A stretch of DNA of 64,000 nt, taken from assembly GCF_964188315.1 (NCBI RefSeq), contig NC_135667.1, positions 15,562,001 through 15,626,000 of the forward strand, given 5' to 3'. A model generated the notes under the pieces. The model ran no database searches, was not told the origin of the DNA, and was given only the letters and a program-made list of their open reading frames with translations. The position numbers and the translations under genes are program-made. Below, in pieces: positions 1 through 13,445 of this stretch. The DNA is from Podarcis muralis (Eukaryota). Position 1 is the first letter of the stretch. Each line of letters opens with the position of its first letter.

Positions 1-1210
1 CTCCCTGCACCGCTTCCTGCTCTGCGGATGCGGCCAGCACCTCCCGGTACTCGGGCTGATTCGCGGCCCCGTCGCCCAGATGCTCCCATAATCCTCTCTG
101 GGCTGCGAATGATCCTGGAGGGGATGCGCGCGATCCTCGGGTGGCCGCGCTTCCTCTGTGGGCTGCGAGCGATCCTCGGTAGGCTGCGCGTCCTCTCTGG
201 GCTGCGAGCGATCCTCGGGTGGATGAGTGTCCTCTCTGGGCTGCGAGCGATCCTCGGGTGGCTGCGCGTCCTCTCTGGGCTGCTAACGATCCTCGGAGGG
301 CTGCGCGTCCTCTGTGGGCTGCGCGCGGACCTCTGGGGGCTGCACATCCTCTCTGGGCTTCGCGCCCTCCAGACCCATCTTCGCGATTCTTAGCATCGGC
401 CGCCGGCAGGGCGAGATGAGATAAGCCGCTGGTTGAGGGTTGCGAGGAAGGCAACGGCCAGGGCGCAGGCCAGGGGGGCGCGCAATCGGCCTCCTGGCGG
501 AGCAGCTCCACTCCCAGCACCGCTTCCTGCTCTGCAGATGCGGCCAGCACCTCCCGGTACTCGGGCTGATTTGCGGCCCCGTCGCCCAGATGCTCCCATA
601 ATCCTCTCTGGGCTGCGAGCGATCCTCGGGTGGCTGCGCGTCCTCTCTGGGCTGCGAGTGATCCTCGGGTGGCTGCGCGTCCTCTGTGGGCTGCGAGCGA
701 TCCTCGGGTGGCTGCGCGTCCTCTCTGGGCTGCGCGTCCTCTCTGGGCTGCGAGCGATCCTCGGGTGGCTGCGCGTCCTCTCTGGGCTGCGAGCGATCCT
801 CGGTAGGCTGCGCGTCCTCTGTGGGCTGCGCGCGGACCTCTGGGGGCTGCACATCCTCTCTGGGCTTCGCGCCCTCCAGACCCATCTTCGCGATTCTTAG
901 CATCCGCCGCCGGCAGGGCGAGATGAGATAAGCCGCTGGTTGAGGGTTGCGAGGAAGGCAACGGCCAGGGCGCAGGCCAGGGGGGCGCGCAATCGGCCTC
1001 CTGGCGGAGCAGCTCCACTCCCAGCACCGCTTCCTGCTCTGCGGATGCGGACAGCACCTCCCGGTACTCGGGCTGATTCGCGGCCCCGTCGCCCAGATGC
1101 TCCCATAATCCTCTCTGGGCTGCGAGCGATCCTCGGGTGGCTGCGCGTCCTCTCTGGGCTGCGAGCGATCCTCTGTGGGCTGCGAGTCTTCTCTGGGCTG
1201 CGCGTCCTCT
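1..1210. repeat. Hierarchical tandem repeat: 507-510 bp units containing 18/21-bp GC-rich minisatellite subunits
   Basis: Unit landmarks at 28, 538, 1045 and at 394, 901; subunits gctgcgagcgatcctcgggtg and gctgcgcgtcctctctgg. Confidence 0.95.
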
Positions 1211-2097
1211 ACCGGCTGGCTGCGCCCGCGGCACCTTCTTCCCCTGGCCTTTGGAAGGCATCCTGAGCCCTGGAGGAGGAAGAACAAGAAGGGCGCTGGA
1301 GGCTGGCCAAGAGCGGAGCAGCTGTGCCGCGGAACCGACTGACCCAGGGCCCTCAGGGGAGCGGAGGAAGATCCGCCGACGGCTGCCCCGAACCGGGTGG
1401 CTCAGAGGAAGCTGCCGGCAACGCCCTTTTAAAAGCAGATGAAACGAAAGTTGGCCGCGCTCTTAATGGGCTTTGGGGGTGAAGGAGGGCTCTGCCGGGC
1501 TCAGGGGAGTCGAAAGGAAGCGGGCACCAGGCAGGAAGGGCCTCTACCTGCTGGCTGCGCTGGAGGGTCCTTTGCAGCGCCCATAAACCTTTTATTAAGA
1601 AATAATATTTTAAATATTGGATTGTCTGGGAAGGAATTCATTACAAGGTGAAGTGCCTGAGGAATTGAATGGGTGGAGGGTAGAGGGGTTGGAGGAGAGG
1701 CGGAAAGAGGCGCTAATTTCTCCGTGGGTAGGGGACGCAGTTTTGGACGCATCTACCAGGGGCGCGAGATCCCTTAGCTACGGCCCTGGCCGCTGCGCTC
1801 CCTCCCCAGCCGCTCCTTACTGTTACCGGTGGCGATCAGGAGCTCCTCGGCGCGGTCCTTGCAGTTGATGGCTTTCAGCACCTTGGCGGTCAGCTGCACG
1901 GCGTACTTCTCGGCGTAGAAGCTGACCAGCATGTTCGTCAGGTCCAGCGTCTCCGCCTTCTGCAACTTCCCTCGGGGGATGTTCGCGTTGCCCTTGCGCA
2001 CGGGGAACTCGTTCAGCTTGGCCTTGAACCTCCTCAACTCGCCCTCATTCAAGTTCTCCAGGCACGCCAGCAGGCAGTCTCGCGCGCTCCTCGCCAT
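1..2097 (-). CDS. PYD-containing gene P1 (5' part): PYD exon 2097-1821 spliced to a tandem-repeat exon 1425 to <1; continues beyond the window
   Basis: PYD exon has Kozak gcgccATGG, an in-frame TGA just upstream, and a phase-1 donor A|GTAAGG at 1820. Acceptor ttttaaaag|GG at 1426. The matching frame has no stop from 1425 to base 1 (checked manually). Confidence 0.7.
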
Positions 2098-2450
2098 GGC
2101 GCACCTTCAAGTGTCTGCAAGAAATGAACCTCGCTTCGCGGAAACTGCAAAATTGAAAGCAGGCATGGTGCCTGGGGTGGGGTGGGGGATGGGGATGTAG
2201 GACTCGGTGCAGCGGGAGGAGAGAGGCGTGGCCTGAGTGAAAGCTCCAAAAGGTGCCGGAAACGCTCCCCCGAGGCTCCCGCGCTTTCCTCTGTCTGTTT
2301 ACTTAGCAAGCTGGGCAGAGACGGTTTCTCCCGTTATAAACATTTGCTTACAAAAGGCGCTCAGGCAGTAGTGGAGCAAGGCAGGTGTAGCTGTAGGGCG
2401 GCAGGCACCCTCCTCGGAGGCCCCGCGATCTCCCCCCGCCAAGAAAAGCT
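1200..2450. repeat. Segmental duplication, paralogous to about 10370-11620
   Basis: Colinear high similarity across exon 2 start, intron, PYD exon and upstream region. Confidence 0.9.
1821..2097 (-). CDS. Pyrin (PYD) domain exon, ASC-like
   Basis: [74 protein letters not shown] resembles the ASC/PYCARD PYD; 277 nt, phase 1. Confidence 0.9.
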
Positions 2451-2815: not shown

Positions 2816-3163
2816 GGGGACGCGGGTGGCATAGTAAAAGCCTCAGCGCCTAGGGCTTGCCGATCGAAAGATCGGCGGTTCGAATCCCCGCGGCGGGGTG
2901 CGCTCCCGCTGCTCGGTCCCAGCGCCTGCCAACCTAGCAGTTCGAAAGCACCCCCGGGTGCAAGTAGATAAATAGGGACCGCTTTCTAGCGGGAAGGTAA
3001 ACGGCGTTTCCGTGTGCTGCGCTGGCTCGCCAGATGCAGCTTGTCACGCTGGCCACGTTACCTGGGAGTGTCTCTGGACAGCGCTGGCCCCCGGCCTCTT
3101 GAGTGAGATGGGCGCACAACCCTAGAGTCTGTCAAGACTGGCCCGTACGGGCAGGGGTACCTT
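2816..3163 (+). mobile_element. Sauria-type SINE with 14-bp TSD
   Basis: gggacgcgggtggc...ggttcgaatccc...gtacctt; TSD tattaataaacgta at 2802-2815 and 3164-3177. Confidence 0.85.
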
Positions 3164-3189
3164 TATTAATAAACGTATCTGCAAATTGC

Positions 3190-9136: not shown

Positions 9137-9330
9137 CTGCTCCCCTGGCCCCTCTTGGCTGCGCCCATGCTGGGAATCCAGACAAACCCGCCCACCCCCC
9201 TCGCAGCGGGAGCACGTGGAATCCACCTTTGAACTTCCCCAGATCCGACTTCTGCAAGCCCCCCAGGGCGCTGAGCAGCAGGGGAGAAGGCGGCTCTTGG
9301 GTCTTGCCCTTGCCCAACGGTGCACCCAGC
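9137..9330 (-). pseudogene. Truncated PYD exon remnant
   Basis: LLLSALGGLQKSDLGKFKGGFHVLPLRGG matches PYD helices 1-2; cut off at the LTR boundary 9136; homologous to 12700-12850. Confidence 0.6.
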
Positions 9331-10149
9331 AGGAGGTGCTAAAGTCAGGGGTGAACGATGGCGTCATGACACCTTGGGTGGGGCATTGCTACACAGCGCG
9401 CATGTGCAGCATGCACTGTATATAGCGACGCCGCACATGCGCTATACATAGTTCGGACGGTGGTGGGATCCCTCCGTAGCCCCTACAGCCGCATGTAGAG
9501 GATCCCCTCCCTTTTTTTATTTAAGTACACATTTTGAATGTTGAATGTTTTGAGATTTTATTTGCTTATTGTGGATGTTGACATGTATGAGAAAGATTTT
9601 TGAGAATTTATGACAAACCAATAAAGATGAATTTTTTAAAAAATAAAAAAAATCCTAGAATCCTAGAACTGTAGAGTTGGAAGGGACCCTGAGCCCTTAT
9701 GTTGTTATTGCAATAATAATAAAACAATGATGACAACAATTGCGCAGTAGGCCAGTTTAGCCAGTAATTGCTTGGTGACAGGTTAATAAAATTACATAGG
9801 AAACTGTGTGACGTAGGCAATTTCCTGCCATTGTGTTGTGGTTTTCCTGGTTCAGTTACAAAATGAGATAGAGAGAGAAGCGAAAAGGGCAGTTATGCGG
9901 CAAGACGAGGCTTTCAGTGGAAGAGCCCACTCCCCAGTTTTGCTAAGTAAGTCGTCCCCCTTCCCCAAAATGAAGCAAAAGCGCTAATGAACCTCAACCA
10001 CCTTTACTCTACTGCCGCTTTAAACCACCGGAGTATCTCATTTCGCGGCAACTCGCCGAACTCGGGACGAGGCAAAAGTTTCGCTCCCCTCCAGACCCCC
10101 CCCCCTCACGATCCTTAGTATCCACCGCTGCCAGGGCCAAAGCTAAATG

Positions 10150-10400
10150 GCTACCCAGAAAGCACTCTGGGCTGTGAGCGGTCCTCCGGGGGCTACGCCT
10201 CCACTCTGGGCTGCGAGCGATCCTCCGGGGGCTGCGCCTCCACTTTGGGCTGCGCCCGATCCTCGGGGGGCTGCGCGTCCTTTCTGGGCTGCGCCCGATC
10301 CTCGGGGGGCTGCGCCTCCTCTCTGGGCAGCGCCCGATCCTCGGGGGGCTGCGCGTTCTCTCTGGGCTGTGCGTCCTCTCTGGGGTGCGCGTCCTGTCCC
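10150..10400. repeat. GC-rich minisatellite, a single shorter counterpart of the 1-1210 array
   Basis: ctgggctgcgcccgatcctcggggggctgcgc repeats. Confidence 0.85.
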
Positions 10401-10590
10401 GGCTGCCTGCGCCGACGGCACCTTCTTCCCCTGGCCCTTGCAAGGCATCCTGAGCCCTGGAGGAGGAAGGACAAGAAGGGAGCTGGAGCGGCTGTCCCGC
10501 GGAACCGACTGACCCAGGGCCCTCAGGGGAGCGGAGGAAGATCTGCCGACGGCTGCCCCGAACCGGGGGGGCATTGGCCACTCAGAGGAA

Positions 10591-11284
10591 TCAAGCGGGG
10601 CCGGGAAGCTGCCGGCAACTCCCTTTCAAAGGCCGAGGAAAATCTTCCTCTGCTAAATCAGGAAAGGAAACACCCGGGGGGTTGGGTATGCGGAGGGGAG
10701 CTCTCCTGGGCTCAGGGGAGTCGAAAAGGGGTGGACCCCAGGCAAGAAGGGGCTTTACCTGCTGGCTGCGCTGGAGGGTCCTTCGCAGCCCCCGGAAACC
10801 TTGTACTAAGGAATAATAAATTAAATATTGGATTGTCTGCGAAAGAATTCCTTGCAAGGTGAAATGCGTGAGGAATTGAATGGGTGGAAGGGGGAGGGTT
10901 GGAGGAGAGAGCTAATTTCTCCGTGGCCAGGGGGCGCAATCTGAACGCTTCTGCCAGGGGCGCAAGATCAGCCTGGCCGCTGCGCTCCCTCCCCAGCCGC
11001 TCCTTACTTTTCCCAGTGGCGGCCAGGAGCTCCTCGGCGCGGTCCTTGCAGTTGATGGCTTTCAGCACCTTGGCGGTCAGCTTCACGGCGTACTCCTCGG
11101 CGTAGAAGCTGATGAGCAGATCTTTGAGGTCCAGCGCATCCACCTTCTGCAGCCGCCCTCGTGGGATGTTGTCGTAGCCCTTGGAGATGGGGAACCTGTT
11201 CAGCTTGGCCTTGAACCTCCTCAGCTCGTCCTCGTTCAAGTTCTCCAGGCAGACCAGCAGGCGGTCCTCCGCGCTCCTCGCCAT
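10591..11284 (-). CDS. PYD gene P2, predicted PYD-only protein (~102 aa; exons 11284-11008 and 10622-10591)
   Basis: [46 protein letters not shown]...; phase-1 donor at 11007; exon 2 reads [10 protein letters not shown] then TGA. Confidence 0.7.
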
Positions 11285-12689: not shown

Positions 12690-13445
12690 CCGCCCATCTG
12701 GCTGGGTTGACTGGGGGGACACCTGCCCCCCCTTGGCTGCGCCCATTCTGGGAACCCAGACGAGCGCATGGAATCCGCCTTTGAACTTCCCCAGATGCTC
12801 CAAGCAGCAGGGGAGAAGGAGGCCCTCGGGTCTCGTCCTTCCCCGACAGCGCGGCGGAGCCCGGCAGGTGGCGCGAAAGGAACACGCTCTGATTCCAAGG
12901 CTTCCCTGGCCGTTCGCGTCGGCTCCGATTGGCCGCGCGGGCGGAAGGGGGCGGGTGCGGAGCTCCGGGCTCCAATTCTCATCTTGCTTTCGCTTTCCTC
13001 CCGTCTGAGGAAGCTCCTCTGCTCTAACAGCTTCCGCTTTCGCTTTCTGTCCTCCGGAAGGGAGGAGGCGGGGCTTGGTGGAGGCTCCTCGCGTCGGGCG
13101 CGCCAGCCTTGTTGCGACTGGGGCTCCTTCCTCTCGAGAATTTCCTTCTCCTCTCCCGCCTGTGCCTTCGGCGCGCGGAAGGGCTCCTCGGGGCTCTCCT
13201 TCCCGGCCTCTGCCGAAGTTCCTCTGCCGGGGAACTGGGACTCCAGAGCCCGCCGAAGGCGCCCGATGGCGTTTAGGACAGCCCGGTTGAGGGCCTTGAG
13301 GGAAGGGTCGGGTGGGAAGGATATCGCTGAATTCTTCATAGAGCGGGCAGGCTCTGGAGGCAGTATTCAAATTGTCCTTCCCACGGTCTTTGCACAGAAG
13401 AACAGATTCAAAGCAGAGCCCTAGCTGCGGGTGTGTGTGGACCAA
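12690..13445 (-). pseudogene. Decayed first exon (GC-rich N-terminal extension plus partial PYD)
   Basis: ORF ends LLLPCCLEHLGKFKGGF (PYD helix 1/2 with a deletion), then is cut by a repeat tail near 12700; weak similarity to the gene C upstream region near 58500. Confidence 0.5.

Follow-up and report, generated by a model that had tools for sequence, protein, structure and literature searches.

In primates, the pyrin-only protein POP1 arose from the exon encoding the pyrin domain (PYD) of ASC; its gene adjoins ASC, it carries an ASC-like PYD without a CARD, and reports of pyrin-only proteins are confined to humans and higher primates (PMC7555848). Here we describe P1, a gene of the wall lizard Podarcis muralis, which resembles POP1 (PYDC1, also ASC2) in that it too is a duplicate of the PYD exon of a neighbouring ASC gene and encodes an ASC-like PYD without a CARD. 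P1 lies at the left end of the window, as we call the whole 64-kb stretch of DNA that was analysed (GCA_964188315.1, OZ076966.1:15,562,001-15,626,000; free of any N), on the minus strand and with the ATG of its PYD exon at position 2097. A tandem paralogue, P2, is located at 11284..10143 (-). P1, which is annotated under uninformative names, derives from ASC, is POP1-like and has a tail encoded by a minisatellite.

With the POP1 type of PYD-only protein, P1 shares its origin by exon duplication and the absence of any effector or oligomerisation domain (CARD, NACHT, FIIND or HIN). The size of its product falls outside the range of PYD-only proteins (about 90-113 amino acids, aa), as does that of P2: POP1 is 90 aa long and consists of the PYD alone, whereas P1 and P2 carry second-exon tails of 763 and 103 aa, respectively. 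The origin of P1 and P2 is also independent of that of POP1, having taken place in lacertid lizards. The parent gene, ASC (PYCARD), shares its upstream region, donor site and arginine junction codon with P1 and P2, but has a short linker and a CARD (185 aa in total), whereas the CARD is missing from P1 and P2 and nothing in the ASC coding sequence is homologous to their second exon. Pyrin (MEFV), to which the NCBI name 'pyrin-like' refers, also has an N-terminal PYD encoded by exon 1, but its B-box, coiled coil and B30.2 are missing from P1. The CARD8/NLRP1-like sensors are built of a FIIND (ZU5-UPA) followed by a CARD, and P1 has neither: its frame reaches a stop at L004:1782-1784, and the 22 kb to the left of the window gave no FIIND match. 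In the S100 fused-type proteins (filaggrin and its relatives), an exon for a small folded N-terminal domain is spliced to a giant terminal exon of copy-variable tandem repeats. Their resemblance to P1 is an architectural analogy only: domains, sequence and biology are unrelated, and no homology is implied. A literature search found no paper on the P1 gene or on reptile POP-like genes.

Gene structure, reading frame and origin from ASC

Pfam analysis, database searches and AlphaFold2 folds were run on single-exon translations. Exon 1 of P1 matched the Pfam family PF02758 (PYRIN; the PAAD/DAPIN death fold) with an E value of 8.9e-24 and 83.9 bits, against a cut-off of 22.9. In the PDB, its best sequence matches were human ASC PYDs (E 7.5e-20), ahead of pyrin (E 1.5e-16) and POP1. 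The AlphaFold2 model, obtained with a nine-row alignment, has six helices and a predicted local distance difference test score (pLDDT) of 88.8, and a Foldseek search with it placed the ASC PYD 7e5b at the top (template-modelling score, TM, 0.91), with cPOP1 (4qob) at 0.89 and pyrin at 0.88. By sequence and by its six-helix fold, P1 exon 1 is a PYD. Pfam identified no domain other than the PYD in the exon translations of P1 and P2, and no B-box, coiled coil or B30.2. ASC PYDs match it better than pyrin does, and the name 'pyrin-like' reflects only the PYD.

An earlier reading of this DNA, made from the letters alone and referred to below as the sequence-only reading, had proposed that the PYD exon ends in phase 1 and that its frame carries on through a very long repeat exon. 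Both points were borne out: phase 1 results from either of two candidate donors, and the frame entered is open for 763 codons. Its account of the three minus frames was likewise accurate. Codons that start at p mod 3 = 1 include no stop from 1429 to the window edge. Of the other two frames, one has stops at 1211, 899 and 392 and the other at 285, and the positions 897, 390 and 283 of the sequence-only reading correspond to 899, 392 and 285. The splice sites had to be revised. The donor of P1 reads AACA/GTAAGG (the slash marking the exon boundary), so that exon 1 ends at 1821 and the intron begins at 1820. The acceptor consists of a 20-nucleotide (nt) pyrimidine tract plus CAG (...TTCCTCCTCCAG/GG), with AG at 1271-1270 and exon 2 beginning at 1269, and its equivalent is the one used in every annotated relative; the P2 model has the donor AAAA/GTAAGG and an acceptor with a 20-nt pyrimidine tract ending in CAG. 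The acceptor at 1426 preferred by the sequence-only reading was dropped as the main site, since the stretch 1426-1270 changes the frame in the paralogue and in other species. Its donor (G/GT at 1827/1826, with GT at 1826-1825) occurs in P1 only, being absent from P2, from ASC and from the P. raffonei and P. lilfordi orthologues, and the conserved, annotated donor is situated six nt downstream. As both pairs of sites are in phase 1 and lead to the same frame, the frame originally proposed stands, with 52 fewer residues.

Frame and splice sites are supported by the gene models of relatives. The P2 protein P0012 (XP_077774086.1) equals exactly the translation of 11284..11009, the split codon A/GG (R) and the translation of 10454..10146; the 325-aa model of P. 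lilfordi, the P. raffonei protein P0001 and the older P. muralis protein P0003 share the same junction; and the NCBI coding sequence in the P. muralis genome ends exactly at the stop of the used frame. An alternative frame, EDRSQPREDAQPP (EDRSQPRED...), seemed more protein-like and was rejected: it is not the splice-phase frame, and it contains stops in both P. muralis copies and in the P1 orthologues of P. raffonei and P. lilfordi. Across the 39-mers of six arrays, four of the six possible single-step stop variants were seen in the EDRSQP frame vs none of six in the used frame, a contrast that is suggestive (p about 0.03-0.08, with the count of possible variants and the p value worked out by hand).

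The sequence to the left of the window was followed on L004 which, like L003, is identical to the reverse complement of the window where they overlap; L004 runs 22.5 kb past window position 1, and L004:1784 corresponds to window -1024. The frame of P1 ends 1,024 nt left of the window (stop at L004:1782-1784, window -1022 to -1024), and an AATAAA is found 91 nt past this stop, at L004:1875. The next gene, about 8 kb further on, is ASC/PYCARD itself (L004:10001-13235; P0013, XP_077774087.1), with PYD and CARD. Gene A is the upstream FIIND-containing gene that starts at window 20572; its FIIND and CARD exons, used as tblastn queries against the 22 kb left of the window, returned only the CARD of ASC and a 100-nt CARD fragment, and no FIIND. 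The sequence-only reading had raised the question whether FIIND and CARD follow the array, which would make P1 a PYD-array-FIIND-CARD sensor, and had named multivalent protease bait as one possible role of the array, next to nucleic-acid binding and condensate scaffolding. The neighbouring Gene A does have FIIND and CARD exons, but the leftward extension of P1 leads to the stop, the AATAAA and then ASC, and the P. lilfordi orthologue likewise ends in its array exon. Such a sensor is already refuted at the level of genomic layout and we accord it next to no probability; a protease bait has no known way to signal here, because there is no FIIND. An 'ASC with expanded linker' (PYD-array-CARD) was also considered and rejected, as no intact CARD lies downstream and the array gene of P. 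raffonei ends before the ASC locus.

The block comprising the upstream region of ASC, its PYD exon and the first ~30 nt of its intron 1 (L004:9740-10307) is 83.4-83.8% identical to 2336-1791 in P1 and to 11526-10978 in P2. At the protein level, the PYD of ASC P0013 is 83% identical both to the PYD of P1 and to that of P0001, the P. raffonei orthologue of P2. In both copies, the sequence of ASC intron 1 is picked up again where the repeat unit ends (window 405-359) and in the 3' flanks. Relative to ASC, P1 and P2 contain an insertion of roughly 0.9 kb or more, which supplies the 39-mer array, the acidic segment and what remains of the intron. Neither the other parts of the window nor the 22 kb to its left gave a match to this insertion, and no homologous protein was found outside Podarcis. 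In a tree of the shared block, P1, P2 and ASC form three clades with several species in each; therefore, both duplications predate the splits among P. muralis, P. raffonei and P. lilfordi. On these alignments, P1 and P2 are partial tandem duplicates of ASC that took in its putative promoter, PYD exon and intron start and are completed by an orphan 39-nt minisatellite exon.

Two further observations concern the ASC copies. In the PYD exons (that of ASC at L004:10001-10276), synonymous divergence (dS) between P1 and P2 (0.15-0.25) exceeds that of either copy vs ASC (0.08-0.13), despite the derived insertion common to P1 and P2. This pattern is a hint of gene conversion with ASC as the donor, unless it is noise from the small sample. 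In addition, a Sauria-type tRNA-derived short interspersed element at 2817-3165, upstream of P1, is 93.8% identical to L004:8842-9194 upstream of ASC, with more copies scattered across the region.

The repeat tail and the constraint acting on P1

Positions 1-1210 form a two-level tandem repeat, in which 39-nt subrepeats are contained within units of ~507 nt; G+C content of the repeat region is 68.6% (measured over 1-1000). The first three units of P1 exon 2 (Table 1), with lengths that are all multiples of three, each consist of 39-nt (13-aa) subrepeats and an 82-aa non-repeat segment. A fourth unit of about 500 nt follows, and then a diverged terminal unit that shifts the frame into the stop. 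The unit length of 169-170 aa given in the sequence-only reading applies to units 1 and 2, the third being longer at 184 aa. The predicted product of P1 comprises the PYD (92 aa), the junction arginine and the 763-aa tail, 856 aa in all. The predicted tail is composed of 21% Ala, 13% Arg and 12% Gly, with an isoelectric point of 11.3 and a net charge of about +46. Its charge is patterned, basic blocks of 13-mers (+14 to +21) alternating with the 82-aa acidic blocks (-7 or -8). The expectation of a cationic array thus held for the tail as a whole, though it is not uniformly basic. The disorder expected with it is not shown by the single-sequence AlphaFold2 model of one unit (mean pLDDT 64.5): the acidic segment was given a low-confidence helix, residues 42-92 were coil (mostly pLDDT <50), and the 13-mer array was drawn as one long helix (pLDDT 80-86), a prediction to be taken with caution for an Ala-rich repeat folded without an alignment. 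The tail contains 49 RG dipeptides, spaced by the 13-mer, and no RGG tripeptide; RGG/RG-motif proteins are a loose class and not a family.

Against 1.84 billion representative proteins, the used-frame tail found only Podarcis relatives above noise, the matches P0004-P0011 being unrelated low-complexity proteins. A protein search with the acidic segment alone gave no match, a weak blank, since a poor score would be expected even for the partial match in P. lilfordi. One Pfam candidate was discarded: LLCFC1 (PF15838) scored 28.9 bits against a cut-off of 27 in the translation of L004:3-1781 (residues 416-446), no single stretch passed, and the score is probably a spurious sum of weak matches to the repeated acidic segment.

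The length of the tail differs widely among copies. For P2, it is 103 aa in P. muralis, 151 in P. raffonei and 158 in P. lilfordi; for P1, it is 109 aa in the old P. muralis model, 232 in P. lilfordi, 300 in P. raffonei and 763 in the present assembly. The P. lilfordi array is a single unit; therefore, the four-unit array represents an expansion in the P. muralis lineage. A separate observation concerns the 13-mer of P. muralis P1 (window 605-1267 and onward), which reads RGRAAT and conforms to the RxRxxT pattern of basophilic-kinase sites; its T is replaced by P or L in P. raffonei, in P. lilfordi and in P2, so that the pattern is not conserved.

Starting from a sequence anatomy, an ASC origin, a lack of FIIND and CARD and a used frame shared with annotated relatives that we consider established, we favour reading P1 as a two-exon, ASC-derived gene for a POP1-like, CARD-less modulator that acts through the ASC PYD and bears a variable tail in which basic and acidic blocks alternate (probability about 0.6). 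Expression of P1 in P. muralis and translation of the full array are presumed from the gene sequence, as is any function. The PYD exon is intact in the six copies compared (two paralogues in three species), with neither indels nor stops, and the divergence of P1 exon 1 is 5.4-6.5% vs 8.6-11.3% for the P1 intron.

Several observations weigh against this reading. The length and C-terminus of the tail vary among close species through frameshifts and early stops. Variants of the 39-mer across the six arrays comprise 10 synonymous and 30 non-synonymous changes in the used frame, about the neutral expectation; among the four P1 units, the corresponding figures are 5 and 7, with 1:11 and 3:9 in the other frames. 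The tail is only weakly constrained, with no clear purifying selection in these counts. The ratio of non-synonymous to synonymous divergence (dN/dS) of the PYD is 0.4-1.8, compatible with relaxation, and the position of human ASC D54 is N in the P1 clade of the alignment. Finally, the NCBI gene that ends at the array stop begins at the ATG of Gene A (L003:713, window 20572, to L004:1784) and has a 1667-aa product; therefore, the PYD-to-array join is not its listed product, which in this gene collection is only the longest one per gene.

One alternative is that P1 and P2 are young, drifting duplicates, left over from segmental duplication around ASC and either transcribed or silent, whose open tail frame is owed to chance and to the 3n periodicity of the minisatellite and whose product, if made, has no selected function. 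The tail without synonymous excess, its ends altered by frameshifts and stops over lengths from 103 to 763 aa, and the dN/dS of up to 1.7-1.8 for some pairs of PYDs all fit such drift, as does P2 exon 1, scarcely more conserved than its intron (3.6-4.0% vs 4.0-5.2% divergence). Chance openness was gauged with dinucleotide shuffles. One 507-nt unit stayed open in a given frame in 4.5% of them and in some frame in 13%, the latter favouring drift, and the ~950 nt of non-redundant exon stayed open in a given frame in 0.2%, figures that look more significant than they are, given the interdependence of the internal 39-mers. Set against drift are the six intact PYD exons, the age of the P1, P2 and ASC lineages, which exceeds that of the species splits, the used frame that is open in all six arrays while an equally mutable neighbouring frame has gathered stops, the conservation of the splice sites and the gene models in three species. 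We regard drift as unlikely, though far from negligible.

The NCBI model raises a different possibility, namely that the array serves mainly as the terminal coding exon of Gene A, giving a sensor with a repeat tail in place of the CARD and leaving the PYD exon of P1 as an unused relic. Besides the span of the called gene itself, the arithmetic is compatible with it, as 1667 - 764 = 903 aa fits Gene A minus its CARD exon, and since death-fold exons are in phase 1, the join would stay in frame. However, Gene A has a CARD exon of its own, which contains a stop at 13892-13890, the upstream gene of P. raffonei and P. lilfordi ends at the CARD while their array gene starts at the PYD ATG of P1, and a listing restricted to the longest product may hide a PYD-started isoform. 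P2 is nested within an intron of the 1667-aa gene. This model is probably a read-through fusion of two genes, possibly with shorter PYD-started isoforms, and a principal use of the array by Gene A appears to us quite improbable.

Possible role in ASC assembly

What P1 retains of ASC is the upstream region, the PYD exon together with the phase-1 donor, and about the first 30 nt of intron 1, while the place of the CARD exon is taken by a terminal exon formed of an orphan 39-nt coding minisatellite, encoding R/G/A-rich 13-mers, and the 82-aa acidic segment. A block of ~507 nt within this terminal exon has been amplified in tandem in P. muralis. The mechanism that we propose for P1 as a POP1-like modulator starts from its PYD. 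The residues of P1 that match E13, E19, K21 (as R), K26, R41, D48 (as E), D51, L68 and L73 of human ASC are retained in the alignment, and single mutations at those positions of human ASC abolish filaments or specks (PMC7830601). As P1 has kept all residues at which one mutation is enough to abolish filaments of human ASC, its PYD could dock on, or co-polymerise with, the PYDs of ASC or of sensors. Lacking a CARD, the protein would neither cross-link filaments nor recruit caspase-1, and would for this reason compete with ASC assembly or cap it, as described for POP1 (PMC7555848); PYD-only proteins of the POP1 type bind ASC or a sensor PYD and damp inflammasome output. The tail, bulky and built of basic and acidic blocks, might project from the filament and alter sterics, solubility or polyanion binding, and could be viewed as a fast-evolving, weakly constrained appendage.

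A bolder version, which we hold to be doubtful, is that lacertids independently evolved a length-tunable inflammasome rheostat, in which a polymerisation-competent ASC PYD is combined with a hypervariable, minisatellite-encoded polyampholyte whose copy number tunes the assembly of ASC filaments and specks or adds polyanion or nucleic-acid binding. The copy number of the array would then differ between species, and perhaps between individuals too.

If the POP1-like reading is true, the two tandem duplicates of the ASC PYD that adjoin ASC in wall lizards represent an independent, convergent origin of CARD-less ASC decoys. That a cluster of CARD8-like sensors is located next to them suggests that sensors, adaptor and brakes have co-evolved locally. 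From the second exon it can be seen how a non-coding or orphan minisatellite is captured as coding sequence and then grows, within a single genus, from about 100 residues to about 760. It has to be noted that annotation of these genes is inconsistent, with 'pyrin-like', 'uncharacterized' and the 1667-aa two-gene fusion model all in use, and that curation would help.

Feature coordinates and minor observations

Table 1. Features of P1 and P2 and of their relatives; positions refer to the window unless a sequence name is given.
Feature	Species	Position	Strand	Length	Description
P1 upstream region and 5' untranslated region, inherited from ASC	P. muralis	2098..2336	-		Part of the 573-column block 2336-1791, 83.4% identical to L004:9740-10307
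P1 exon 1, coding part	P. muralis	1821..2097	-		ATG at 2097, 92 PYD codons, then base A (1821) of the split codon; phase 1
P1 intron	P. muralis	1270..1820	-	551 nt	GT at 1820-1819, AG at 1271-1270; contexts nearly identical to those of P2; the same sites rebuild the P. lilfordi 325-aa model exactly
P1 exon 2, window part	P. muralis	1..1269	-	2,293 coding nt (exon)	Exon reaches window -1024 (L004:1784); 763 open codons, stop L004:1782-1784
Lead basic block	P. muralis	1112..1267	-	52 aa	Net charge +14; K/G-rich start plus three 13-mers
Repeat unit 1	P. muralis	605..1111	-	507 nt, 169 aa	82-aa acidic non-repeat segment, then 13-mers of AAQRGRAATRGSL type
Repeat unit 2	P. muralis	95..604	-	510 nt, 170 aa	About 91% identical to unit 1 over 701 nt
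Repeat unit 3, start only	P. muralis	1..94	-	552 nt, 184 aa (unit)	Runs past the window; unit 4 and the degenerate terminal unit come after it
P2 exon 1 (PYD)	P. muralis	11008..11284	-		77% aa identity to the P1 PYD (tblastn 77.8%, first 90 aa); Pfam PYRIN E 9.7e-24; P0012 residues 1-92
P2 exon 2	P. muralis	10143..10456	-		103 codons of R/G/A 13-mers in the used frame; stop 10145-10143; P0012 residues 94-196
P2 orthologue P0001	P. raffonei			244 aa	PYD, R and R/G/A 13-mers
P2 orthologue P0002	P. lilfordi			251 aa	PYD, R and R/G/A 13-mers
P1 orthologue	P. lilfordi	L002:19154-20726		325 aa	92 + 1 + 232 codons with the sites of P1; its end coincides exactly with that of the called gene
P1 orthologue	P. 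raffonei			393 aa	Begins at the PYD ATG; the visible 105 exon-2 codons are open in the used frame
P0003 (XP_028560029.1)	P. muralis, old annotation			202 aa	Uses this junction; the tail then moves into another frame

In the old P. muralis protein P0003, 6 of the 92 PYD residues are unlike those of P1 in the window, and the tail stays in frame for about 50 residues only. P0003 may represent an allele from a divergent lineage, the result of an assembly indel, or a further paralogue.

Between P1 and ASC, the 100-nt CARD fragment (L004:5377-5476, window about -4617 to -4716) is 97% identical to the middle of the CARD exon of Gene A (14093-13995), and a ~200-nt copy of ASC upstream sequence adjoins it. 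The two look like debris of segmental duplication. Weak PYD-like remnants with the motif ...GKFKGGFH... were also observed on the minus strand at 9150-9278 and at about 12690-12800; their PYD type is unlike that of P1 and P2, and they are probably pseudo-exons.

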